This document shows positions 13,296 through 41,100 of a stretch of DNA of 49,285 nt, one piece after another. Location: positions 24,387,810-24,437,094 of the forward strand of contig NC_068991.1 of NCBI RefSeq assembly GCF_001194135.2, in the 5' to 3' direction. The notes below the pieces were generated by a model. It was given only the letters and a program-made list of their open reading frames with translations, was not told the DNA's origin and did not search any database. How positions within the stretch are numbered: the first letter of the stretch is position 1; each line of letters opens with the position of its first letter. Position numbers and translations under genes: made by a program. The stretch comes from Octopus bimaculoides. Its lineage: Eukaryota.

Positions 13296-14135
13296 GGATC
13301 TTTTTGGTTTGACGGGCAACACTTGTTTTCTTGACGAAACGCTTTCAAATTTGGGATACTGGTAGAATGTGTCATATAAAACATCTTTTTCTCTTAGCCT
13401 TCTTAACAAAAATTAGTTCTTAATAAGTTATTTCGTGTTAAAGTTGTCGTATTTGTGTAATTTCAACCAACCACTGACGTCTATTCAGCTGAATACAGTT
13501 AGTGCTGTGGAATGTAAACAACGGTGTCATGGGATCTTTTCCCTTGAATAAAATTAGTGCCGTTGTTTGTCAACAACAACTATCGGCGGTAGTTATTTAT
13601 AACATCGTTCGTGCGTTTGGGTTAGGGTTCGGGTTTTAGAGTTAGGGTTAGGGTTTTAAGGTTAGGGTTAGGGTTAGGGTTATGGTTATGAGTTATAGGG
13701 TTTTAGGGTTAGGGTTATGAGNNNNNNNNNNNNNNNNNNNNNNNNNNNNNNNNNNNNNNNNNNNNNNNNNNNNNNNNNNNNNNNNNNNNNNNNNNNNNNN
13801 NNNNNNNNNNNNNNNNNNNNNNNNNNNNNNNNNNNNNNNNNNNNNNNNNNNNNNNNNNNNNNNNNNNNNNNNNNNNNNNNNNNNNNNNNNNNNNNNNNNN
13901 NNNNNNNNNNNNNNNNNNNNNNNNNNNNNNNNNNNNNNNNNNNNNNNNNNNNNNNNNNNNNNNNNAAATTACCGAAATACGACAACTTTTTACATGAAAT
14001 AACTTCGAATACAAAATTTTTTATCTGTTCTATAATACAAAATATACAAGCATACGAAGTTTGAAAGTGTTTCGGTACCAAAAACACTACATAAAACATT
14101 AATGAAAAATGTTGCCCGTCAAACCAAAAAGATCC
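13296..14135. mobile_element. Non-autonomous foldback/MITE-like DNA element with long TIRs and an internal telomere-like array
   Basis: Perfect 25-bp terminal IR GGATCTTTTTGGTTTGACGGGCAAC (13296-13320 / 14111-14135). The IR continues imperfectly to about 170 bp (AGTTGTCGTATTTGTGTAATTT / AAATTACCGAAATACGACAACT). Flanks ATCAATTG / ATCAATTA (7/8) resemble a TSD. Confidence 0.82.
13619..13721 (+). repeat. Degenerate (TTAGGG)n interstitial telomere-like array, continuing into a gap
   Basis: GGGTTAGGGTT units mixed with variants such as GGGTTTTAG and GGTTATG. Confidence 0.93.
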
Positions 14136-14169: not shown

Positions 14170-14477
14170 TTTATTTATGCGCCCTTTTAAAGCCTAGCCA
14201 GGCTCGTGGGCCCGGTTTCCCGGTTTCTATGGCGTATGTGTTCCCACCAACTAGACGGGACGCCAGTCCATCGCAGCGTTACTCAAGAAACAGGAAGAAA
14301 GAGTGAGAGAAAGTTGGGGCGAAAGAGTACAACAGGGGTCGCCCCTACCTCCTGCCGGAGCCTCGTGGAGATTTAGGTGTTTTCGCTCAATAAACACACA
14401 CAACAGTCTGGGAATCGAAACCGCGATGCTCCGACCGCCAGTCCGCTGCCCTAACCACTGGGCCATTGCGCCTCCAC
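14170..14477 (-). mobile_element. Full-length tRNA-derived SINE
   Basis: Head GTGGAGGCGCAATGGCCCAGTGGTTAGGGCAGCGG...GGTTTCGATTCCC (A and B boxes). A-rich tail. 13-bp TSD AGTTAGCTAGATT (14157-14169 / 14478-14490). Confidence 0.9.
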
Positions 14478-15661: not shown

Positions 15662-16080
15662 TGTCCCTTACATTGCTAGATGTCCATTAAATTTGAAATC
15701 TTAATTTTTGATATAACATGGTATGTCATAGGTGTCTGTATATTGTCTTTTTTGTCATTTTGATTATAAAATAAACAGATTAATCAACGGAATATTGTGT
15801 CTGCAAGTTGTTGAGTACCTCATATTCCCCTCCATTTTCTTATTGCTATACATATATNNNNNNNNNNNNNNNNNNNNNNNNNNNNNNNNNNNNNNNNNNN
15901 NNNNNNNNNNNNNNNNNNNNNNNNNNNNNNNNNNNNNNNNNNNNNNNNNNNNNNNNNNNNNNNNNNNNNNNNNNNNNNNNNNNNNNNNNNNNNNNNNNNN
16001 NNNNNNNNNNNNNNNNNNNNNNNNNNGTGTCCAGTTTGTTTTGCCAAGGGAAGTTATCCCTCTCATCGTGATCTGTAGCA

Positions 16081-16125
16081 CGAACGGACCCGGGTTTCAG
16101 GGTTATTTCCCTTCGTCAGCGTCCG
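16081..16125 (-). ncRNA. Minimal type-I hammerhead ribozyme, downstream copy; predicted cleavage between 16087 and 16086
   Basis: Minus strand: CGGACG-CTGACGA-AGGG-AAATAA-CCCT-GAAA-CCCGGG-TC^CGTTCG. Stem I 6 bp, CUGANGA box, 4-bp stem II, GAAA box, palindromic stem III, GUC triplet. Confidence 0.9.
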
Positions 16126-16431
16126 ATAGCCACTGATCTTTGATGAGAGAGATAAATTCTTGGCAATCTGATGTATACTTTTCCAGTGAAATTCTTCGCT
16201 GATATCGAAAAGGTGAAAACAAGCAATGTTAATTCTCTAAATGAAGTATTAACAGTAACTGCACGATAAAGTGAAGTATATTGCCACTTAAGTGTGGCTG
16301 ACCCCTAGGGGTGGATGTTACTGTTGCTTTTAGCCCCAGGAGGACATCTCCTCCAGCTGGCTTATCGACACACTACTGTGTCCTGTTTGTTTTGCCAAGG
16401 GAAGTTATCCCTCTCATCGTGATCTGTAGCA

Positions 16432-16476
16432 CGAACGGACCCGGGTTTCAGGGTTATTTCCCTTCGTCAGCGTCCG
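16432..16476 (-). ncRNA. Minimal type-I hammerhead ribozyme, upstream copy; predicted cleavage between 16438 and 16437
   Basis: Identical sequence to 16081-16125. Confidence 0.9.
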
Positions 16477-16545
16477 ATAGCCACTGATCTTTGATGAGAG
16501 AGATAACCATAATTCAGAAATAAAGAACACACACACACACACACA

Positions 16546-16581
<36 letters not shown>

Positions 16582-16969
16582 CTTTATTTCTTAAATATGT
16601 TTAGCATTGATTTCATGTTAAGAAGAGAGGGAAAATATCCAAGTATCTTAATTATTTTTCAAGCTGATCACATGCAGAAAGGTTTTCACCTCCATTTTGG
16701 AAAACAATCTCATTTTGTTCACGGGATTACTCGTAAATTCTCATAAATGAAACAATGAATCAGAGGGACACTACTCTAGAATGCATTTTTCAGAGTTTAT
16801 CTCCCTTGGATTCGTCTCTTCGATAAATTTCTTAATTTTTTTGTATTATTTGTATCAACTTGTTCTGAGCATAGTGTTTTGTACTAGTATATTGAAGCTT
16901 GTTTCTTCTTTGTGTAGAGTTTGTGACATTTCTAGAGTATAGACGTCTAGTGTGCGCATCAGATTTTTG

Positions 16970-17400
16970 TTTTCACCGAACGTATCGAACATTACACCAA
17001 GTTTTGCCAAAAGCTTGGTGATACTCAAGCTCAAACCATCCAAAAGATTCAGCTGGCTTTTGGTCATGATGTTATAGTCAAAACTCAAATCAAGGAGGGT
17101 ACAACCGCTTCAAACATGGCAGCACCTTAGTGGAGAACCAGGCAGATTCAGGCAGGTTATCCACAAGCTGAAACGAGGAGTCAACCGAGAAGGTCCAGCG
17201 AATAGTCATGGAAGACTGTTGTGAAACAGTCTAGAAAATGGCTCATGAAGTGGGACTAAGCACAGAATCAGTGCATTCCATTTTAGCCGAGGATTTGTAC
17301 ATGCGAAGTGTGTCGGCGAAATTCGTCCCCAAGGGGCTGGCGGATCGGAAATCACCTAGGACATACTAGACTGTGCAAACTACGACCCAGACTTCATAAG
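16970..17400 (+). mobile_element. Mariner transposase remnant (N-terminal HTH region)
   Basis: KFCQKLGDTQAQTIQKIQLAFGHDVIVKTQIKE, a frameshift, then YNRFKHG...SGR, and MAHEVGLSTESVHSILAEDLYMRSVSAKFVP (the WVPHEL-equivalent linker). Confidence 0.8.
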
Positions 17401-24873: not shown

Positions 24874-25020
24874 TTAGTCTTGCATTTCTTCGGGAATTTC
24901 ATGTGGACCAATAATACCAGGAACTGCCATCTGAATTTTCCGTTTTTCCTCTTGAGCTTGTCGGATAGAAGCTTCTCGTTCCTCCAAAAATAAATCACTG
25001 TTGTCTTCACCAGCAAATTC
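24874..25020 (-). CDS. XPO1: XPO1 last coding exon: [48 protein letters not shown]
   Basis: 147 nt including TAA at 24874-24876. Confidence 0.96.
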   Translation of the reverse strand, partial: EFAGEDNSDLFLEEREASIRQAQEEKRKIQMAVPGIIGPHEIPEEMQD

Positions 25021-27940
25021 CTATTTTAAATAATTAACAATAAAAAACTCCATGATAAAGTGTGTTATGAACAAAAGCCACAGGTCAATTAATTATTCTA
25101 CAAAGAATAAATCCTTTCTGAGAAATAACTAATCTAAATTACACTATTTCTTGATGATGTTTTGATGCAGGTTTGCTAAAACTAGAGATATTGTAAAATT
25201 TGAAAATTTTGAATGTTCCATTGCCATATATTGCTGTTCAAAAACACTGCTTTTGTTTCAATTTAATTTTTAAAATAATGAAGAATTTAGTAAAATAATT
25301 TAGTCATTATTAAGTTCATGTTTGAGATATACATTAACACAGAATTTTTATGGTAGGTTTTTAACTTAAGTAACTTTAGAATAGGAAATTTATATTGCAG
25401 AACTAGGATCAGTCTTAAAGCAAGCTGGTATTAAAAGGGTCAAAACAAGATTTGAAAAACAGAATTGGTAATGATTAAATAAATATAAAATTTAACTTAC
25501 ACGTATCTGCACCAAGAAATCCCTCAAATGTTCTTTAAAAGCTGGGATATCCTGATTGAAACTGAACAAGCCATCAATGAAAACTTTGATTTGGGGCCTG
25601 AAATAAATATTAACCATGCATTACAAATGTACATATATTATATCCACTGAAGAAAGTAGAAACTTAATCGATATGTTCAGCTATCAAAGACACACCATAA
25701 CCTCCATAATGGTTGAATTCTAGCATTCTTTAAGAATGACAGAATTATAACAAGTTGGTGCTATCTCAACATGGTACGAGACACTAAAAGTCAAAATTTA
25801 TCCATGATGTAACCCTTAAAATATGATTTATAATCTGAAAAGGTTCAAACTTAAACTGCAATCCTAAAACAGCTGATTTTAAATCATGCTGATGTGGAAA
25901 TATAATTAAAAAAATTTCTACATTCTGTCTGTGCATATTTGAAGACAAAGACTGCTGATGTTTCAGTACTTAAAAAAAAGGAACCCTATTCACAAAATAG
26001 AAAATAAAGGTATTATTCTGTAAAAAAAAATCTCAACAGACAAAATATATCTATTCTTGAAGGGATCAGCTCTGTTTTCTTCCTAGCATAAAAATGGTAG
26101 GTTAATAGATAAACATAACAGAAAGAAATCAAAATAATTTGACTGTAAATATTCACTATATATATATATACATACAGATTCCTATGTTTTATTGGAACAT
26201 GAAAATAAGTATATATTTTTTTATCATAACCATTTACTGGTATAAAATTATCAAACCATATACCGGTATAAAATGAATATTGTTTAATTAAGCCACATAG
26301 TTTGTGCAACCATAATTTTCAGCAGTTCAAAATGAACAAAACCTTTAAGCTACCAGAATATAGCAAGATGTAAGAAAATCATCAACGATATACACATTTG
26401 TAATATTCAATCAAATGGAAGATAATTTTTGTAATTTCCAAATGTTTCTGCAAATTACAAAAATTACCTTCCATTTTAAGAATAAAACCATTCACATAAA
26501 AATATTTTAAACATGAAACCACTTGGGAAAATGTTATAGGCTGTACAGCCTTCATAAACATCTAGCCATATAATGTAATTTTAAATCTTTTTACTTACTC
26601 ATTTAAGTGAGGGAAAGCTGCCTTTAAAAGATTCAGCAAAAATTGTTGAATGTACGTAATATTTTGTGTATTTTGTATATTAGGCCCCAAAGAAACTGTG
26701 ACTTTATTTGCTTCAAGCAAGCTAAACATGTAAGCAAGAATAGTTGCATGCATTGTCAAACCTACAAAACAAAAAAACATTTACATATCAATAAGCAATT
26801 ACAAAAATGTAATATCAATAAACAAGTTGCATTTATTAATCAACTACAAAAGATTTAACTCAGTAAAAATTAAAAAAAAAACTTAATCTGTAAAGATTCA
26901 TGCCTAATTAGTCCAGCAGTTCTTTAATGGAAAACTACGACCACCACCACTCCCAACAAAAAACATTGGTGAAATCCACTCCACACTTTATTAATGCGAA
27001 AAAATAGAGTTTGCCTCTATATAATCCTTCTTCTTCACCATGGTTTTGGACAAGTTAAAAAAGTTTTAAAACCAACTTAAAATTATGAAACAGCAATATG
27101 TCTACCTTCTTTTCAATGCTTACACCCTCGCCTTTGATGAGAAACACTGTATTAGACAACAGTTTCACTAGTTAGAAAAGAACTATCAATTCCACATCAT
27201 GAAAGAACAGTTTGCATTAATAACAACAGCAAGCTGTAAAAACATACTTCTAAAACTAAAAGGTTTATCTTAAGCATGGTGAAAACAATCAACTCCACAA
27301 GAAGGGTGAAAAATAAAGTTAGCCTCAGAAGGAGTTGCAGAACCAAAGAAATACTACAAAGTATTTTGTCTGACGCTCTAATGAACATGCCAATCCACTG
27401 TCCACTGCTAATATTTTATTTTTTTATTTTATTTACCACAAGGGTGACGCATGAGGTAATATTACAAGGAGTGGTTTACAGAAGTGAGAATGTTTAAACT
27501 GAAATCTAACAAGCAAGAATAAGAAAGTCAAAGTATACAAAATTATATGACTTTTGAATAACATTCCAAAGGACACCACAGATCCTAGACGATTCTCACT
27601 ACCAAAGGTTTCTTCTCATCTTCTCACAGCTGTAATTCCCCACCAATTCATGCACACAAAAAGTAGGTTGATTCAAATGGGCTATATTTGCCACTTTCAC
27701 CTAGATCATCATTGTTTAATGTCCGTTTTCCAAGCTGTCATAGGTTGGATGGTTTAACCGAGTTCTGGAGAACCAGCAGTTGCACCAGGCTCCAATTTGA
27801 TCTGGCAATGATAATACAGCTGGATGCCCTTCCTAACGGCAAACAATCCGAGAATGTAACAAGTGCTTTTCATGTGCCACTGGTACAGGAGCCAGTCAGG
27901 CAAGCCTGGCATCGATCACGTTTGGATAGTGCCTTTTACG

Positions 27941-27983
<43 letters not shown>

Positions 27984-30900
27984 TTGAAACAAAGGCAATG
28001 TATTCCAAAGGAAATATGGTAACAATAGGGTTAAGAAATATGAAGAAAAAAACGCCAAGTAGATTTGGTCAAAAGAGGGATAGAAGTTTTAAGAACAATT
28101 TTAATAAACTAGGTGCCACTTACCAGCAGTATGTGAACTATCTGTAACAACTGAAAATATATGTTGTAAGATATCTGTAAAATAAGTTTGGTAGAAACTT
28201 TGCGCTGCATTTTCATGTTGTGCTACATTTTGCAACAACGTATAAAGTATATCAAGCCCAATATCGGCCACATTCCTCATTGTATGCTTGAAAGCCCAGA
28301 TAATTGAATCCAACACCAATTTGAATTGAGCTGGAGGAATATCCAATAGAGCTGGAAACAAAAAAAAAATAACAAAATAAATAAGAAATCTCAACTGCAA
28401 AGCAAAAAAAAAATATATAAAATGAAAAGCATTTGGCCCTTTCAATACTGACCCACCCAAGACCATCCTATATTCTTATTAACACCACATATGTACACAC
28501 ACAAAATCTCAAAGTCTTGTTGAATGACAATGCAAGATACCAATAAACAACTGTCAGTTGATGTACATCAAACACTGGTTTAATATTCCAATAAAAGAAA
28601 TTCATTAATTTAGAAAATCTTATCAAAATTATCGTTTTAAATATTTACTGTAATACACAGGTGGTTCTACTGTCATTAGAAATGATAGTGAAATGAAAGA
28701 GTTTAGAGATTTTAGCGAAACAGTAATAGTTACGTTAATTTTTACTTAATAAATTACTCCCAACAAGTATAATATTCATTATCTAGAGGTTTCTATGGAA
28801 TTATTTTAAGGCACTAGTTTTCTTGATTGTATGTTAATCAACATTTAAGTTAAAAATAAAGACTTTCTTACCTTGGAAACAGTGGAAATTGACTGCTTGT
28901 AATAATAAGAAAAAGTTGGTTCTGTGCTCTGGGAATTCCTCAAAATCCTAAAAGAAAACCGGGTAATAAATTAATAGTGATCTGCTATATTAATACATAG
29001 ACATCCATTACAGAAAATAGAATGGTTTATTTAATTCACTCCATTACACGACAGGGTTCTATTTTATCAACCATAAAGGAATGAAAGAGAAAATTAACTC
29101 AGAATATAAAAAGAATATAACTGAATAGTGTATGTTATTCAGTGTAGCTCTCTACAGTTTCTGTCATTTACTGAGAGACACTACATTTAGTATGGGTCTA
29201 CAATTTCTATCATTTATTGATAAACTGAAATCAGGGACAGAAAAAAGAAAAAAATAATAATAACTAGCTGAACCTGTAAAAACTTCACAGGAAATAAAAA
29301 ATGTAAGCATCTGTAAATTGTGTGCTGATGCCATGAGAAATTGTGACACTTACAGAATATCGAAAGCCGTGTAAAACTGATAACTATATAATCCAACCAA
29401 AAAAAAATCTGTTATGCAAACGTAAACAGAATTACTATTTAGCCTTAAAATACATCATACATATTCAAAGAACCTTCTTGGTTTAGTGGTACGGTATTCT
29501 TTTATTCTTTTGTTTCAGTCATTTGACCATGCTTTAGTCAAAGTAATCGACCCCTGGACTTATTCCCTGTAAGCCTGGTGCTTATTCTATCAGTTTCTTC
29601 TGCCAAACAGCTAAGTTACAGGGACGCAAACACACCAACATCAGTTGTCAAGCGATGGTGGTGGGGGATAAGCATACACACATATATACGACAGGATTCT
29701 TTCAGTTTCCGTCTACGAAATTCACTCCTGAGGCTTTGGTCAGTCCAAGTTGAAAGTAGGAGACACTCTTTAAAGTATAGAGTTGAATTTTGTGTAGCCA
29801 CCTGTTGGCAACTTTTCTCCCCCACCCATTTTGTAGAGGGTATTACCCATTGTTCTGGGCTCTTTTCACAGCTATACCCCATTGAAAATTTGCATAAAAA
29901 AAAGGACTTCGCCACCTTAATAATCATCATCATTTAACATCCATCTTCCATGCATGCAAGGTAGGACGGCCGACAGGAGCCAACCAGGTAGAAAAACTAC
30001 TCTAAGTTACTGTCTGTTTTGGCAGGGATTTTACGGCTAGATTCCCTTCGTAACACCAACCACTCCGCAGAGTGGACTCAGTGCTTTTTACGTGGCACTA
30101 GCACAGACAAAGTTAGTGTTGGCATGATTTTAACAGCTGGATGCCCTTCCAAACGCCAACCACGTTAGTGTGGGCTGGATGCTTTTAACATGGCATCAGC
30201 ACTGGCAGGGTAACCAAGTAACTTGCAAGACAAGGAATTATGAGAGTGGCAAGGCATTTCAGGAGGGGAACTTGTGTCAGAGGATGAAAGGTTACAGTTT
30301 GACAAAGAGGCCTGAAATTTTGGGGAGTATGGTTAGTCAATTACTTCATCCACAGTGCTCAACTGGTACTTATTTCACTAACCCCAAAAGGATGAAAGGC
30401 TTTCAACTTCTGCAGCATTTGAACTCAGGACATAAAGACAGACGAAATGCCACTGCATTTTGTCCAGTGTGCTAACAATTTGCTAGCTCACCAGCTTATT
30501 ATTATTAATAACAATAATAATTTTATAACACAGGCACTAAATAAAAATAAAAACATTGGGTTGAGAAGGTGTCATTTTTAAGCTGACTTCAGGGCTTGAT
30601 TGGCAAATATTTATCAACCCAAAAGAATGAAACTCAAAATCAATCTCAGTAGAATATGAACTTGGAATGTAGAGTAGGGACATGTGTATGTATATCTGTA
30701 TTCTATTCTTTGAGGGTTTCAATGAAGGAGAATAGCACTGATCGGAGTCATCTCAATGTTGTCCTTCAAAAACATCTCTTGCTAAGAGACACAAAAGAGC
30801 ATATTCACTACTTTGAAATTAATGATAACATTGTATAACATGATTTTTGTCCTTGAGTAGCAACTGTTATTTCCTATTTGCTTACCCATAGAAAGTATGG

Positions 30901-33900
30901 AAAATGGCTATTTCCTTCCAACTTTGCTTTTGTTACATTTATTCAAACCCCAAAAAACCCTCTCAACACATGGCTATGATGCTCTCCAACAACTCCTGCT
31001 CATGATCAGAGATGCACATATTGTCAGCCACTAAAGGACATGCTCAAGTGGTTATGGTCAAGCAACTGACAAGCAAATCTGAATTATTGAGCAGAATATT
31101 TACTATAACAATATTTCTGCTTCAGCAACTCAGTGCTGAAGCTGTCTGAAATATAATGGAAAATAAGTCCAGGTCACAAAAGCAAAGTTTGAAGGGAATA
31201 GTTGTCATTTCTTTTAATTTCTAGATAGAAGCAAATAAGAAATAACACTTACTGGCCAAAGACAAAAAAATATTTCAATTTTGTTACACAATGTAATTAT
31301 TATAATAATGAAAATACTAATAGTTAGTATACTTTCAAAATTTTAAGCTGAGTTTATTATTTCATAAAATGACAAATTTTTAACAATACAAACCTTGTTA
31401 ATCATATCTAGAGTACATTCAAATACAGCATCAAATATTTGAGGAATTTCTTCTGTTATATGGCTCTAGAAAATATTTAAAGCAATATTATAATCAATAT
31501 ACATTTATGAATAATAAAAAGTTCAGCTTACATAATTAGGAGTTGTTAAATTTTTTTTTGTTACCTTTAATTAACTAAATGAGATATTTACAAACATAAG
31601 CTTAATGCTTTTTGAAGAGAAGGAATATCATTTATGGAATTGGAAATATTTAAAAAGTTTATGATTGATAAGCATTCACTTATAAAGCAGATCAGTTGTT
31701 CAGTTCATATATTCCTTACTGAAACTGATTCCAATCTTTCTATTAGAATTTGCAGAATTTCATGAAATGTGACCCTATAAACAAGCAAATTCATAATAAT
31801 TAAATAGTCTAAAGTGAATCACAAACTCAAGTGTATATACTACTTAAAGATTCCATTAACTAAACTCAAGAGTTTTCATGCAATTATATATCAATATGTA
31901 TAATTATTATTTTAATTTTTTTTCAGTAGAAAAACCCAACAAATTACTTTTACAATCAATGCAGTTGTGCAAAAGCATGTCACACTAAGGGATATAACTA
32001 CAATTTCTCCACACACACACACACACACACACAGTAAATGCCATTAAGTATGTGGGCTTAATAATTTCTGGTTTGGTACACAGGTGCACGTTTAGGCTAC
32101 CAGGGTAGGTTAGATTCCAAACCATGATGAAGTTAACTCAACCAGGAGATGAGAAGGTAATAGAAAAGCCTAAGTTTGTGGCAAACATTTGCACCAACTT
32201 TCTGCTACCAGCATTCCCAAAAAATGTGACTGGGTAGTCTAACAGTCAGGCTGTGGGAACCTCATACATCAAGATCAACAGAAGTATCAACTGAATATAT
32301 TACACACACAAAGAAGGTGGTAGTCAGGTTTTTGTTTAGAAAGGTAAAAATAAAAAGGGAAATAATGAAGATAATTCAGTATCTCACATGACAGATGCAA
32401 TATGAATACATGCAAGAATAAGTGAAGCTCAGAAACAATAAAATAAAAAATTTAATGATGTGCAGATCCAAAGAAATAGGCATCGGAGAGTTACTAAAAT
32501 GAAACTGCAGAAGAGAAAAATTTACTAAAGAAATTTTAGTAAATGCCAATAAATGTAGTTTTCTGTATTCTAACTTTATCTTACAATCAGTTTTGGTACA
32601 TTTTAATAAAGTAAAGATATATGCTGCTACAGCACAAACAGCTGTACAAGAATAAATAAAAGAAAAATATTTACCGCTAAAGTGTTAACTATAGTGGCCA
32701 TGGTACTAAGAACTTCTGGTTCTCGAGCAGCAGGTACATTTCTCTGGTAGTCTAATAGTACAGCATCCAGCAATGGGGGAATAAAGTTACCAGCAACCTG
32801 ACATTTCAAAGGAAGATTTTAAAATTTGAGTCTACACTTTGAAAGAAATCTTTTACAATGAATCAAAAAATTAACTTAGCACAATTGATTTAAATCTTAA
32901 ATAAAAAAGAATTATCATCACACCTGTACGATTGAAGCTTATGTCAGTGTATAGCTGACATGTACTTCAATTTTCAAAACAATCAGAAATTAACTTTTTT
33001 CATTTATAGGCTTACTTAACAAATGTTTGGAGTGCAAGATTTCAGTGAAAATTTTAATTTAAATATAAACATTTTAATCAGAAGCATTACTATCAAAGGG
33101 CATTTTCTATGAAATATGAAATTACAACACCCACACCCTATTTTTCTAACTAGGTTCAATGCTCATATTCTTGTTACTTGTGAGTATACCCTAGCACTAC
33201 ACCAAGTCTCTTCTGCTCTCTCTTACACTTATGCTGTTTCCTGCTATCCTTTTGTTCATTCTCTCTCCCCTTCTCTTGCTCTCCCTCTGACTAAGTAACC
33301 AAGTATCACCTTTATATCAGCACATTTGTTTCTGGCCTCTTTCTTGTACCTCTCTCTCACTCTCTATCTCTTTTTCTCTCTCACTGGGTAACCATGTATC
33401 TCCTCTATAGCAAGACAGCTATTTCTGCCTCTCTATTTCTGTTACACTCTAGCCTTTCATCATTTGATATTGGATCACCTGCTTCTGTTTCTCTGTCTTT
33501 GTCACACTAACCTTTCATGCACCGAGACAAGTTCCCCTCCTCAAATGCTCTGCCCCTGTCCTAATTCCATGTCTTGTGAGTTACTTGGTTACCCTGCCAG
33601 TGCTGGTGCCACATTAAAAGCATCCAGTCCACACTGTAACGTGGTTGGTGTTTGGAAGAACTTCCAGCAGTAAAATCCCTGCCAAAACAGATACAGTAGC
33701 CTAGAGTAGTTATTCTACATGGCTGGCTCCTGTCAACCGTCCTACCATGCATGCATGGAAGATGGATGTATGATGATGATGTAATGCTTGTTTATTCACA
33801 TTGATATGAATTAGTCATGCCTTACCTTATAGCTTTGATATTCCAATGTCATGATTGCTTATTTTTAGAATATTGTAGGATAAGTGTGAGAGGCTGAATT

Positions 33901-36900
33901 TGGCCAGTTTGAAGATAATACAAGTAGATTATTTTGGCCAGATATGGCTGGATTAAATGCTAAAGGGTTAAATTCCAATGATCTACAATTATGTATTTTC
34001 AATAAAATTAGGGATATGCATTTGCATTATATTGTATGACCATGGCACCATCATATTCTGAATGGCCTGCTGATGATCTCTATCACTTTTGCAATCCAAA
34101 TTCAGAAATATCTATACCTTATCCAAAAACTAGCCACAGTTATTTTTTTATTTTCTTTACATTTTGTAAAGTCTCCAACTGTAAGTCTTCCCAAGCTGAA
34201 ATCACTACGTACTGAAGTAATATTAATTACAAAAAAAAAAACCATTCAAACTCCACTTCAGACATTGAAATAAATGTTATTTCTTTACTACCCACAAGGG
34301 GCTACACACAGAGGGGACAAACAAGGACAGACAAACAGATTGAGTCGATTACATCGACCCCAGTGCATGACTGGTACTTATTTAATCGACCCCGAAAGGA
34401 TGAAAGGTAAAGTCGACCTCTGCGGAATTTGAACTCAGAACGTAGCGGCAGACGAAATACCGCTAAGCATTTCGCCCGGCATGCTAACGTTTCTGCCAGC
34501 TCGCCATTGAAATAAATGTGTTGATGAAAATTTCATAGTATTTACAATCACATTTATAATCGCAGAAATGGCTTTAACTTGCATCACATTGAAGCTACAA
34601 GATTTCAATGACATAATTATTTATTTTTAGAATGATATTGTAGGGAAGGTACAAGAGGCCAGATCTGGCTGGTTTGAATATAAAACAGGTAAAATATTTG
34701 GGCTGGATATGGCTGCTTTCAATACTAGAGTTAAATGATATAGATCAGCTAGGCTATAGCTAAGCAAGGAACAAAAAGATAGGATACCCAACAACAACCA
34801 CAACAACTGCTGTGTGTTAAAATATAGCAAACAAGTTCATAAATTATACAGGAAAAGAATTCCTATTTACAGTAAAGTAGGTTTCTATAGAGGAGAACGT
34901 ATTTACCATTTGTGGATCTGCAGATCGACTGACCCAACCAGAAATTAGCTTGAGGGTCTCTTTCTTTACTGTTCGCATACTTCTGATGAGAGGCTGTTTT
35001 GTAACACTCTCTCCATTTGTAGCAATTGCACTGCTAATATTTTCACTCATCACTTTGTAAACATTAAGCATGTCCAAATAAATTCGTCCAAGCTGAAAGT
35101 AAATTTTAATCCAATTTTTTAATAACAGGGGAGTTCAGTAGCATTTCAATTACAAAAAATAAGCTTTTTCTTAAAATTTATCACATCTGTAACTAGTACA
35201 CAAAAGACACAAGAAAAAAAATCTTATAACTATTTTTTTGAAGTCTTTATAGGCATAACATAATTCAGTTTATGAATATAGAAACGGCATAGCTGCATAG
35301 ATATGGAGTTTGCTTCATAAACATGGTTTCAGGCTCTATCCCACTGCATGGCACCTTGAGCAAGTGTCTTTCTACTGGAGCCTTGGGTTGACCAATGGCT
35401 TGTAAGTGGAGTTGGTAAACAGAACTATATAGAAACCCATTATGTATGAGGGTGTCTAAATGTCATGCATGACAACACTGGAATGAAATGGTGATGACAT
35501 GTCTATGTCACCAATAAACAATACCTTGTTTATCCCTAATTCTTGTGAGAAGAAATGAAAAAATATCCCTTACTTGAAAAAACAGGTAAGAGTTAGTAAC
35601 AAGAAGAATTTCCAGCCTTATAAACAAAATCAAGATGTGAACAATGAAATAAAATCCGTGAAACAGTTAGTTGTACTGTTGGAACTTATAATGGTGTAAT
35701 GGACACAGAAAGTAGATGTATGACGTGCATTCCAGAAGTCTTGAAACTCTTTTTTTTTGTTTTAGGAGAGGCAGTTATAACTTTTCTAGATTATTCTAAT
35801 TTTAGTACATAACTATACATCTGATAAACTGACCTGCCAACTTTTGCTATTTCAAATTGAAGTAGACAGTTGTAACAGCACATTGAATACACTCTATTAA
35901 ACACTGCTTGTCACAACTGACTTGTTTGCAGAATGCAGCCAGGACATTTGGAAGCTCAATATGAAATAAAGTTTTGTGTTAAACTGGGCAAAACACTACA
36001 GAAATTTATGAAATGCTCCAAGGCTGAATATGGATTAACTTTTTTGCTGGCACAACAGTTCCAAAGATGGTTTGAGAGGAGGTAAGAGATGATGAGAAGA
36101 GGTGTAGAAGGGAGAGGGACATCAGATTGTCAAAGATGGTTGAGAAAATTCAAAATTTTCTGGATGAAGACAATCATGTGTCTATAAAGACAATAAGATA
36201 CAGTTTGGAGTTGGTGTGGCAACTATACACAGAATTATTCATGAAGATCTGAACATGCGCAAAATTTGAGCAAAGTTTGTTCCCAGGATGCTCAATGACA
36301 AGTATTCTGGTAACCAACTACTTGACAGAGATGGGAAGTTATTTTGAAGATAAAGGAGGCTGTGACAAGGGTCCTGGACACCTTCACTTTGGAGGACCTT
36401 CATGGAGGCGTTCACAAAGTGACTGGAAGACTACAGAAAGTGCATTAAAGTTGGAGGATCCTACTCGGTAGAGTTTTGTACTTCTTTGAAATTAATAAAT
36501 GTCTCACATGAAAACTTCTGGAATGCACTTTGTATATAAATTAAACTATTATACCAACCTGTAACACATATGGATGCCCTAAAGCCTTACATGCTCGAAC
36601 ATTCGTTTTTAAAATATTACTAAGTTGTTTCACAGCATCAGGATCCTTTAGAACTTCTACATTCTAAAAAAGGAAAAAGTAAATGTTCGAAATTTTACTT
36701 CATTTTATATCAATTTCAAAACATCAGAGTTATTTCAAAAAATATTTCTAAATAATGCACCTACATATGTTACTGAACAGCATGCATAATGTTCAACAAA
36801 CAGCAAATTCTTGAAATGGAATTACAATAAATTTGTAATCAACAATTTTTAAAATTAATTCTATGGATTATATCAGTTCTCACTGACAGTAGCAAGTATT

Positions 36901-38035
36901 TACCTGTGTTGCCTGGTTGATTATACCATCCCATACTTGATTGGGTAACAACATATACCTTTCTATCAAATGATCCTGGGGAACTTGGTCTATTTGTGCA
37001 CTAATCATTAATCCAACAGCTTCATAAAATGTATGAACCTAGAAAAACATTAAGATTAGTATGAAAAATAATATTAATGACATCTTTTGAGCTATCTTGC
37101 TAAATATATTATTAGCCATATATCCAAACATATCCCCTGCTCTATTTACCTGGCAGCACAACATATGAGAACAATCACTGAATGTCAAATAGTAAGGCAG
37201 ATATATAATTAAAAGGTTTACAGAGTTCAGATGGAATTATCTCAAAGCTAGGATAAATTAAATTATTAAAGAGAGACATTAAATTAGTAAAAACTATTGC
37301 ATTTTTGTACTGGTACAGTAGTAAATGGAAACAGTAGTGAGTGTGACCCAAAAAGATTGCATATCTAAACACAATATGCAATGAGATTAAATATTTTAGT
37401 CAAAATATTTTAACACCAGGCCATCCATCCATACAAGTGAGGACGAAAATGTTAAAGTACAACAAAAAAAACTTATTATTAAGGTTAACAGCAATTTGAA
37501 AACTCTAATTTAGGATTGTGAATTTAAGAATTTCAAGTAATACAAATTCATGATTTGATTTATTACAATGTTTCATTTATATGTGTGCATGTGCGTGTGG
37601 TTCCACATAAAAACCACTGGTGATGATGCTGTATAAAAAACACAGGCCATGGTACCACATAAAAAGCACCTAATACACTCTGTAAAGTGGTTGGCATAAG
37701 CAGAACATCCAGCAATAGAAATCAAGCCAAAATAGACTATGGAACCTAGTGCAACTTCTGGCCTTGCCATCTCCTGTCAAACCATCTAATCCATGCCAGT
37801 ATGGAAAATGGACAAAGTTAATAACAATAATCAACACCATCATTATCCACAGGTATGCTGATGCAAACAGGAAAAATACAACACAGAATATGAGTATGTG
37901 TATATTCTTATTAATATTTAGCAGAAGTAACAGAGTGACTCAAGGTCCAAGGGCTTCGTGCATTGGCACTAGTTTGGTAAGTGCCAATGAACAAAACTCT
38001 CAGACTTTGAGTCACTCTATTACTTCTACTAAATA

Positions 38036-38101
<66 letters not shown>

Positions 38102-41100
38102 TATATGCATTAAAAATATATTGACACAATCCAAAAGGTGTAATTACCTGCTGAGGCTGAAGGTCACAAATTATAGTATTGATAGTGGCTAAGATTTCCT
38201 CAATAAATGGCATAACTTCTCCAACTTGAACTTGAACAAAATGGCGGCGACATTTTTGAGCTATCTTAATAAATGTATCACAAGCCATATCCTGTACACC
38301 ATCATGTGTTTCTAGAAAGAGAAATTATTACAGTTGTAAAAATTAGAAAAATGATACTTTCTTACAAATACATGAGACAAAGAAAAATACTATTGCTATT
38401 AATATTCTAATAACTGAATGAAAAGTTTAAATTTTAAAATTTAAACTTTCAGTCAATGCAATTTTGCTAACCACAGACCAGAAAAAATTATCAATTTTAA
38501 TCTTTTTTCAACAATAACAACATATAAAATTTCATATATTTAAACAGACATACTATTGCCCAAATCAAATTTTTTTACTCTATTTAATAAAAAAAAAAAA
38601 CGAATTTAAATATAATTACCATGCATGAATTCAAACAGCTTATTAACCACTGTTTTTAAAAATTTCCAGTGTGCTCGAAGGAATCGGGGGTACTGTCCAA
38701 CAACATACATGATATTCGATGCAATAATGGCTTTATTGTCTTTGCCTCGTTTTTGTTCACACAATCCCAAGAGATCCTACAGCCACAAGAACAGGAGTCA
38801 GATAATTGCAAACAACTAAATACATAAATATATTAATCATTAGAGGACCAATTACAAATAACAAAGACTAACCTTGATTACAGTAACCAAAAACCGTTTC
38901 TCATCATCCTCATACATAGCACCACTAATTGAACCAATAGCCCAACAAAGCTGTAATAAAAAAACATTTATTTAATATTCATAAATATACAAAACACAGG
39001 TAGAGTATTGATATGAGGAATAAGTAGAGAAAGACTACTGAGTGTGTAAAAGGGAGAAAGAGGAGAGCATATCATGCACAGAAGACAAATCTTATACACA
39101 GAAATATAAGAAATGTATTCAAATATGAATTAGATGCAATGCTAGTGTTGTAAACATTTTCAACCACACATACTCAATGATGTGCTTTGCTTGTTTGCCG
39201 GTCAGCTGCGATTTACCATGGTGAGGATGACTCCCTCAAACTGCCGGGTGTCAAAACACTTGAAAGTCATAAACACCCAGCACTTTGAGGGAGTCATCCC
39301 CACCACACCAAATCACAGTCTACAGGCAAACAAGCAAAGCACATACACTGAGCATATGTGATCGATAGTGTATATAAGAAATATAATCTTCAATTAAGGT
39401 TCTATTCCTTGAATAAAATATAACTACATCAATAAAAACATCACATTAAGTAACTAACCGTATTTAAATTTTTCCATGACCACTCTGAGCCATTTACTTG
39501 ATTGTGAAGCTTGTCAGTCATTATATTCTCTGTATCCACATAATCTAAATGAGTGAGGTAAACTGAAGAAGAAAAAAAATCATAATAGCATAGAAAAATT
39601 AAAAGTGAACTGCATCTATCTATTAAAATCTCTTTGATCATGAATGACCATGGGATTGCACTTAAAAAGTTCCCCTCCAAAGCACAAGTCTCGGCAAGGT
39701 TGTTTATGGAAGACCAGCAGTCACCCATGCATGCCAGCCTCTCCTCTCCATGACACTGATGTTATCCAAGGGAAAGGCAAAGGGGCCGATACAGCTTGGC
39801 ACCGGTGATGTCACAACTCATTCCTACAGCTGAGTGAACTGGAGCAACATGAGATAGTGTCTTGCTCAAGAACACAACACAGCCTGGTCCGAGAATCAAA
39901 CTCACTACCTCATGATTGTAAGCCCGATGCTCTAACTACTAAGCCATGTGCCTTTCTTTCTATCTATCTATCTATATATCACCCTTGTTTTATATTTGCT
40001 TTCCATGCCAACATGGTACACACACACGAAATTGTTGAAACAAGAATTTTATTGTGAGATGTTATCTTATAAGGAAAAGAAAAGCAAAGTTAACATAAGA
40101 GGTGTAACCTGGCTGGAACTAAATATCACAAAGCACTTTCATTTGAACAACTAATTCTGGCATATCTTGCCTCTATACACAGAAATTTCTCTCACTCACA
40201 CTCACAAGCATATATATACAAACAATGTGACCAAACACAGAACCATATTGTTGTAAAGCAAACTTTTTAACCATAATTCATTTGTAACAAATTAAAATGG
40301 CCCAACTACAGACAATGAAACTATTGTTGCAAAAAATACAATCAGTAAACTGATATTGAATTGATAAAAATGAGTGATTAATCATTAACCCTTTACCATT
40401 CATATTACTCTGTTAAATATAATCCTTATTTATTCCCATTCATTATCATCATCATTTAACGTCCATTTTCCATGCTGGCAGGAGTTGGACAGTTTTACGT
40501 GGAGCTGGCTAGCAGGAAGTTGTCCAGACTCCAACTGTCTGTTGTGGCATGGTTTCTATGGTTGGATTCCCACTGTTTTGAATTAATCGTGCATTATCTA
40601 TTTGCAATTGAGATTTTGATGATGTACTTGTTTATTTTTAGTACGACATTATAGGGAAGGTGTGAGAAGCTGAACATGGTCAGTCTGTACATAAAACACA
40701 CATAATACTTGAGCCAGATATGGCTGGTTTAAATGCTAAAGGGTTAAACAAATATATTTAAATGTTAATTATAAATAAAGTGGAAATATAAAAAGATAAC
40801 ACAAAATAAAAAAGAAATATTGTTTCCACACATTGATTACAAGACTACAAATTTGCAGTTAAGAGGATATAATTGATTGAAAATATCCATTACACGATTG
40901 GTATTTTACTTTAAAGATTAAAAACCAAAAATCTTATTCGTATTCAAGCCTCAGAATACTAAGTGACGAAACTAAACATGCAAAATATTAGCTGAATACA
41001 TTTCTGCTACTCCACTTATTTCCAAGTTGTGTAAATAATATAATATAAGTAAAATCAAGATATATCACTAAATAAAAAATATCCTTTAATAGCCACAACC

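Follow-up and report, generated by a model that had tools for sequence, protein, structure and literature searches.

A tandem 351-nt hammerhead ribozyme repeat downstream of the Octopus bimaculoides exportin-1 gene is probably a copy of a metazoan retrozyme

The window analyzed here, by which we mean the whole 49,285-nt stretch of Octopus bimaculoides DNA, has a base composition of 34% GC with a CpG observed/expected ratio of 0.5 and is interrupted by seven N gaps. The minus strand carries the exportin-1 (CRM1) gene at ~24877-38288, with exon open reading frames at 37911-38288 and 28101-28466 and further exon matches extending to 24876. The last coding exon of the gene lies at 25020-24877 on the minus strand, and a Pfam CRM1_C relative was found. 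This exon places the repeat element described below on the same strand as exportin-1 and ~8.4 kb past its stop codon, in DNA that is apparently intergenic.

The assembled part of the element (16027-16506, minus strand) consists of 1.37 head-to-tail units of 351 nt, these being a complete repeat unit (unit 1) at 16156-16506 and a partial unit of 129 nt (unit 2) at 16027-16155. The 129-nt direct repeats (16027-16155 and 16378-16506) are offset by exactly 351 nt and are identical at 128 of 129 positions, the sole mismatch being 16033 versus 16384. A preceding sequence-only reading of this DNA had described direct repeats 351 nt apart that carry two identical 45-nt motifs on the minus strand, and both the repeat comparison and the motif scan agree with that description. 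The 5' boundary of the element is at 16506-16508 and its 3' end enters an assembly gap of 169 N (15858-16026), which conceals the 3' junction together with any further copies. The DNA on the far side of this gap does not resemble the 351-nt unit, of which no additional copies were found within the 49-kb window.

As unit 2 stops at the gap, the tandem arrangement depends on a single contig edge. The tandem could therefore be an assembly artifact, in which case the locus would hold a single unit with one hammerhead, the second copy having arisen at the contig edge from gap closing or from the collapse of reads that belong to other copies. That copy 2 ends exactly at the 169-N gap, that the one mismatched base is 7 nt from the contig end, and that the seven gaps give the window a short-read-scaffold look are all in keeping with such an origin. 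However, the sequence runs uninterrupted from the full unit into copy 2 with one mismatch, and tandem organization is the norm for retrozymes, the class to which we assign the element below. We consider an artifact to be very unlikely and note that the locus would even then have an intact hammerhead within a retrozyme-like unit.

The 45-nt motif, CGGACGCTGACGAAGGGAAATAACCCTGAAACCCGGGTCCGTTCG, has two identical occurrences on the minus strand, hammerhead 1 at 16432-16476 and hammerhead 2 at 16081-16125; being identical, they provide no covariation for or against the helices. A search of the whole window that allowed up to three mismatches gave no other matches to the motif, and none were expected based on 100 shuffles. 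When read directly from the sequence the conserved type-I core is complete (CUGACGA ... GAAA ... U-C^C). Helix I (CGGACG/CGUUCG) has 6 bp including one G-U pair and is the open helix, as is found in type I ribozymes. Helix II (AGGG/CCCU) has 4 bp and a 6-nt loop, AAAUAA, whereas helix III consists of two base pairs, A15.1-U16.1 and C15.2-G16.2, capped by CCGG. Cleavage is predicted to occur after C17 of the GUC triplet (GUC^C), at 16438/16437 in hammerhead 1 and at 16087/16086 in hammerhead 2. Direct reading and the descriptor scan given below bear out the earlier claim that all of the core elements are present in both motifs, and the predicted cut sites are the same as those previously given. 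That reading had also called the motifs "minimal" type-I hammerheads with a palindromic stem III. The palindrome is indeed present, but the motifs are not of the minimal type found in Penelope-like elements (PLEs). Their dimensions are those of the "canonical" metazoan type I, in which helices I and II have 6 and 4 bp, respectively, and helix III has 1-2 bp with a small palindromic loop (PMC4209133). These features support assignment of the motifs as type-I hammerheads of canonical metazoan architecture. Note that the 10.1-11.1 pair at the base of helix II is A-U in the octopus hammerheads, whereas the usual (although not universal) pair is G-C. The A-U pair may lower ribozyme activity; the axolotl Ax353 ribozyme has U.U at 10.1-11.1, and its cleavage is poor in the monomer and good in the dimer (PMC7229834).

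A type-I hammerhead descriptor (helix I of at least 4 bp, CUGANGA, a helix II hairpin, GAAA, A15.1-U16.1, and H17) detected these two sites only in the 49-kb window and none in 300 dinucleotide-preserving shuffles. By the same descriptor no hammerhead was found on the plus strand of the 351-nt unit. A covariance model, called R1, was built from the coral Amil224, mussel Mg353, and axolotl Ax353 and Ax330 hammerheads with the octopus sequence left out. These four seed hammerheads have been shown experimentally to cleave and their sequences are given in Supplementary Table 2 of PMC7229834. R1 aligned with the two octopus motifs across each of its 44 positions, 12 of 12 pairs being standard, at a score of 21.6 bits (E = 6e-4 when searched over the whole window, 1.7e-5 over 1.4 kb), and the runner-up scored 9.6 bits. 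The score was also 21.6 bits for each of the two motifs when the filters were turned off. The Rfam hammerhead models, which the sequence-only reading had put forward as a check, gave a different outcome. These curated models reported no match at the gathering score in the whole window, and at E<=10 there was likewise no match in slices of 571 nt and 81 nt, a negative of uncertain weight for ribozymes with so short a helix III. The Rfam matches that were obtained were miRNA noise from microsatellites and included no hammerhead.

The predicted 351-nt monomer, which extends from cut to cut (16087-16437, minus strand), is 43.9% GC. Its MFE is -115.9 kcal/mol versus -82.7 +/- 5.5 for shuffled sequences (z = -6.09), none of the 100 shuffles being as good, and neighboring 351-nt windows gave values of -62 to -90. 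Folding of the monomer as a circle gave an MFE of -114.1 kcal/mol (z = -6.1) with ~60% of the bases predicted to be paired. The predicted junction of the circle joins position 351 to position 1 (...CCCGGGUC onto CGUUCGUG...). Helices I and II are both present in the predicted MFE fold of the monomer, and the hammerhead flanks are predicted to pair together such that a branched, largely double-stranded molecule is closed. Retrozyme and viroid-like circles have been described with the same flank-paired, self-paired fold (PMC7229834).

These data bear on the notion that the motif is a chance hammerhead-like sequence within an inert local duplication or satellite, having neither ribozyme activity nor an RNA product. 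The lack of an Rfam match and the A-U pair at 10.1-11.1 would fit such a sequence, but the type-I descriptor gave no hits in 300 window shuffles, R1 matched with an E value of ~6e-4 and all pairs intact, and the fold energy of the unit is exceptional (z = -6.1). A chance origin is thus extremely improbable.

Given that the motifs read as hammerheads, helix III merits comment. Its strands lie within an 8-nt palindrome, ACCCGGGU, that runs from A15.1 to U16.1 (16439-16446, minus strand, with the second at 16088-16095). Two such palindromes are predicted to form an intermolecular helix III having a duplex energy of -14.9 kcal/mol. Cofolding of two 57-nt hammerhead segments gave -40.9 kcal/mol versus 2 x -17.7 for the segments apart, indicating that the predicted dimer is favored by ~5.5 kcal/mol. 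In the monomer helix III amounts to no more than 2 bp and a CCGG loop, yet its sequence is palindromic, and the best cleavage would therefore be expected in the dimeric mode. Ribozymes with a weak helix III are known to cleave best as dimers (PMC7229834).

The coding capacity of the element is negligible, as the earlier reading had stated in saying that the unit has no ORF. The longest run of sense codons in any frame of the tandem extends to 62, and ORFs that begin with a start codon encode at most 58 residues. A Pfam scan of joined stop-free segments of at least 35 residues found no RT, no GIY-YIG endonuclease, and no other Pfam domain across 12.1-21.7 kb, and no PLE was seen in the window. 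ARAGORN reported no tRNA in the unit and Pol III A and B boxes were also absent from it. These two results gave no sign of a tRNA-derived SINE origin or of a Pol III promoter for the unit.

Metazoan non-LTR retrozymes are tandem repeats of 170-400 nt that contain type-I hammerheads, have GC contents of <50%, and lack coding capacity (PMC7229834). The octopus unit, at 351 nt and 43.9% GC, has no ORF and no RT or endonuclease of its own, and everything about the element that could be tested here supports its fit to the published definition. Moreover, intergenic enrichment has been reported for retrozymes and the location of the octopus element agrees with this. Hence, the element most probably belongs to the metazoan non-LTR retrozymes as one of their genomic copies. 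The retrozyme class itself has been well described since 2014-2020, and since 2020 animal elements of this kind have been recognized as sources of small circular RNAs. In the literature searched we found no paper that links hammerheads or retrozymes to octopus or to other cephalopods, and the octopus family appears to be undescribed there.

Like the octopus unit, Mg353 from Mytilus galloprovincialis (Cervera & de la Pena 2020, PMC7229834) is a non-coding head-to-tail repeat from a mollusc, and the two are of similar length (353 versus 351 nt). Both have GC contents below 50% and highly self-paired predicted circles, and both carry type-I hammerheads in which helix I has 6 bp, helix II has 4 bp, and loop 2 has 5-6 nt, with cleavage at GUC. 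The 8-nt palindromic A-CNNNNG-U helix III is also common to both (ACGCGCGU in Mg353 and ACCCGGGU in octopus). They differ at 10.1-11.1 (A-U in octopus, G-C in Mg353) and at 1.1-2.1 (C-G in octopus, U-A in Mg353). Mg353 is found as arrays and in thousands of copies in mussel, and its expression and circularity have been shown, whereas the octopus element comprises 1.37 units and is known from sequence alone. Outside the ribozyme the body of the octopus unit has no significant overall similarity to the mussel or axolotl retrozymes. A 29-nt patch, TGTGTCGATAAGCCAGCTGGAGGAGAT (window 16346-16372, monomer positions 66-92), resembles Mg353 positions 56-82. The score of this patch, which was found post hoc, was reached in 43 of 2000 shuffles (p ~0.02) and at a similar offset in 6 of 2000 (~0.003). 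It is possibly a domain shared by mollusc retrozymes.

The axolotl and newt retrozymes of the satellite-2 type (Ax330 and Ax353) resemble the octopus element in having units of 330-350 nt, a weak helix III, and a palindromic loop. The axolotl helix III palindromes are ACACGUGU and ACAUGU, and activity depends on dimers formed between tandem copies. Neither Ax353 nor the octopus ribozyme has G-C at 10.1-11.1, although Ax353 cleaves at GUA rather than GUC. In contrast to the octopus element, Ax330 and Ax353 are from vertebrates, reach up to ~120,000 copies, and have unrelated body sequences. The LTR retrozymes of plants (Cervera et al. 2016, PMC4918200) have in common with the octopus element a non-autonomous organization in which two hammerheads are the basis for self-cleavage and circularization, the latter two steps being predicted in octopus. 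However, the plant elements have type-III hammerheads located in ~350-bp LTRs, a PBS and a PPT, 4-bp TSDs, and circles of 600-1000 nt, whereas the ribozymes of the octopus element are type I, LTR structure is lacking, and no tRNA-related feature was found.

Hammerheads within direct terminal repeats are also a feature of the pseudo-LTRs (pLTRs) of PLEs (Cervera & de la Pena 2014, PMC4209133; Craig et al. 2021, PMC8557442). PLEs share with the octopus element partial tandem insertion next to microsatellites and are the proposed source of RT for retrozymes. A 2026 preprint reports that retrozymes share their distribution with PLEs and are related to PLE pLTRs, and PLE families (Naiad lineages) have been reported in Octopus spp. 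Both ends of the octopus element are of interest in this regard. Adjoining its 5' end is a near-perfect 100-bp palindrome (16504-16603), which has 46-nt arms that are 91% complementary, the form (AC)n ATGTAT (GT)n, and unique outer arms (AGAAATAAAGAAC and GTTCTTTATTTCT). The palindrome is present in the flank only and is absent before unit 2. Possible origins of the palindrome include the insertion target and a fold-back resulting from insertion, or it may be unrelated to the element; PLEs are reported to favor microsatellite targets. At the other end, unit 2 breaks off within a predicted AC-rich hairpin, GACACA-GUAG-UGUGUC (16367-16382 in unit 1, minus strand; monomer positions 56-71 after the cut), with 16027 corresponding to monomer position 60. 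As short-read contigs tend to break at the junction between a repeat and its unique flank, the element may truly end, on its 3' side, at monomer position ~60 regardless of how many copies are present. In an anole PLE, RT initiation is internal and occurs in an AC-rich stem loop ~90 nt downstream of the hammerhead cut (PMC11167929). The parallel between that site and the octopus hairpin is suggestive only.

Taken in this light, the locus could be read as the remnant of an autonomous PLE, the 129-nt repeats being the pLTRs of a heavily deleted or partial-tandem insertion, and not as a member of a circular-RNA family. PLE pLTRs carry hammerheads, and PLE insertions are partial tandems that are often located in microsatellites, as might be said of an element that adjoins an (AC)n/(GT)n tract. 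The succession of 129-nt repeat, 222-nt body, and 129-nt repeat is akin to a miniature pLTR-body-pLTR arrangement, and the contig exits in an AC-rich hairpin past the ribozyme, like the anole PLE RT initiation site. Moreover, the 2026 preprint derives retrozymes from pLTRs, which makes for a soft boundary between the retrozyme and PLE-remnant readings. However, PLEs have an RT and a GIY-YIG endonuclease between repeats that are ~3 kb apart, whereas the spacing in octopus is 351 nt, the 222-nt body lacks an ORF, and neither an RT nor a GIY-YIG signal was detected between the repeats or within ~5 kb of them. The ribozymes also differ. Those of metazoan PLEs are minimal, having a long helix II, a short helix I, and no helix III (the "min-HHR" with helix II of 7-8 bp and helix I of 4-5 bp; PMC4209133), whereas the octopus ribozyme is a canonical type I. 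Finally, the octopus body is within a compact and very stable predicted fold of the sort typical of retrozyme circles. A PLE remnant is therefore unlikely, and we retain assignment of the element to the metazoan non-LTR retrozymes.

The coral, mussel, and axolotl retrozymes are transcribed and self-cleaving, and both linear and circular RNAs accumulate (PMC7229834). In vitro, the tRNA ligase RtcB circularizes the RNAs efficiently, whereas self-ligation does so poorly (PMC7229834). As the class is well described we propose the same cycle for the octopus retrozyme, for which the present data provide the sequence prerequisites, and by analogy we infer its transcription, self-cleavage, and circularization. 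The cycle would begin with minus-strand transcription across both units. Given the absence of Pol III boxes, transcription could result either from read-through from the exportin-1 side or from an unrecognized internal promoter. The two hammerheads would then cut after GUC at 16438/16437 and 16087/16086, acting best as a helix-III-paired dimer in a multimeric transcript, and the released 351-nt RNA would have 5'-OH and 2',3'-cyclic phosphate ends. A host tRNA ligase of the RtcB type would close this RNA into a stable, highly self-paired circle, and a PLE reverse transcriptase acting in trans would copy the RNA to give new genomic copies.

A protein search with a 61-residue antisense translation of the unit gave one true match, the O. 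bimaculoides UniRef entry A0A0L8IHK6_OCTBM. This "uncharacterized protein" of 54 residues has its first 25 residues identical to one antisense frame of the unit and then shifts frame exactly as would be given by a 5-nt deletion, TGTTTG[TTTTG]CCAAGG. There are also four substitutions, two of which (G to V and P to S) correspond to the antisense of helix III plus the cleavage triplet. The simplest reading of the codons is that GGGUC has been changed to a GGAUA-like sequence in a diverged copy. A0A0L8IHK6_OCTBM is almost certainly a spurious gene model that runs across the antisense of another retrozyme copy, and thus the match indicates at least one further, diverged copy in O. bimaculoides. The sequence-only reading had raised the point of whether the ribozyme core is better conserved than its flanks. 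There was no sign of this in the one comparison available, which was made via the protein model only.

The HMMER search with the 61-residue antisense peptide was done against 1.84 billion representatives and gave six matches at E<=0.001. The five matches other than A0A0L8IHK6_OCTBM were to long repetitive proteins in which many weak stretches had been summed. These were rejected as spurious because the antisense-hammerhead peptide is present in none of them. A0A0L8IHK6_OCTBM was the only other copy found in the collections searched. Exact-pattern ribozyme scans of IMG/VR and the JGI metagenomes (including one JGI scan with helix III left free) gave no match, and exact look-up of the antisense 58-residue ORF and of A0A0L8IHK6_OCTBM in the contig collection returned no record. 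In a contig from a related species (ENA ERZ21867824 ctg114918l) no unit was present in the 5.8 kb downstream of the last exportin-1 exon. The matched exportin-1 exon segments of this contig are ~81-88% identical in nucleotide sequence to those of the window, but its introns and intergenic DNA could not be aligned, and hence the absence of the unit there says little.

If the assignment is correct, the documented range of animal retrozymes reaches cephalopods, and a second mollusc ribozyme with the palindromic helix III design becomes available for comparison with the mussel element. Understanding of how retrozymes work is unchanged. If the family is active, octopus tissues would hold a 351-nt ribozyme-made circular RNA that is missed by poly(A) RNA-seq and by back-splice circRNA pipelines. 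Genome annotation currently has the unit as an anonymous repeat, and at one locus or more it has been given a spurious protein (A0A0L8IHK6). A bolder proposal is that the element belongs to an active cephalopod-specific retrozyme family in which the genomic 3' end lies at the AC-rich hairpin 56-71 nt past the cut and the 5' end adjoins an (AC)n/(GT)n palindrome. We view this as a rather speculative and unlikely extension. With such a family, an abundant ribozyme-derived circular RNA would be added to cephalopod transcriptomes. Should the same geometry recur at many octopus insertions, this would be direct genomic evidence that PLE RTs mobilize retrozymes by the same internal initiation.

Other repeat-like sequences were seen in the neighborhood of the element. 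On the plus strand at 16951-17366 are two short stop-free segments that by eye look like the N-terminal helix-turn-helix of a mariner-type transposase (e.g., KMAHEVGLSTESVHSILAEDLYMRSVSAKFVP); Pfam at E<=0.01 gave no report for these segments. A tRNA-like head in which the Pol III A and B boxes are both well matched (TGGCCCAGTGG at 14455-14465 and GTTTCGATTCC at 14411-14421) is present on the minus strand at ~14400-14470 and probably marks a tRNA-derived SINE. A degenerate interstitial telomere-like (TTAGGG)n repeat is located on the plus strand at 13615-13717, ends at a gap (13722-13965), and is ~2.3 kb from the putative retrozyme. In the earlier literature animal hammerhead repeats were often noted near telomeric sequences and retrotransposons.
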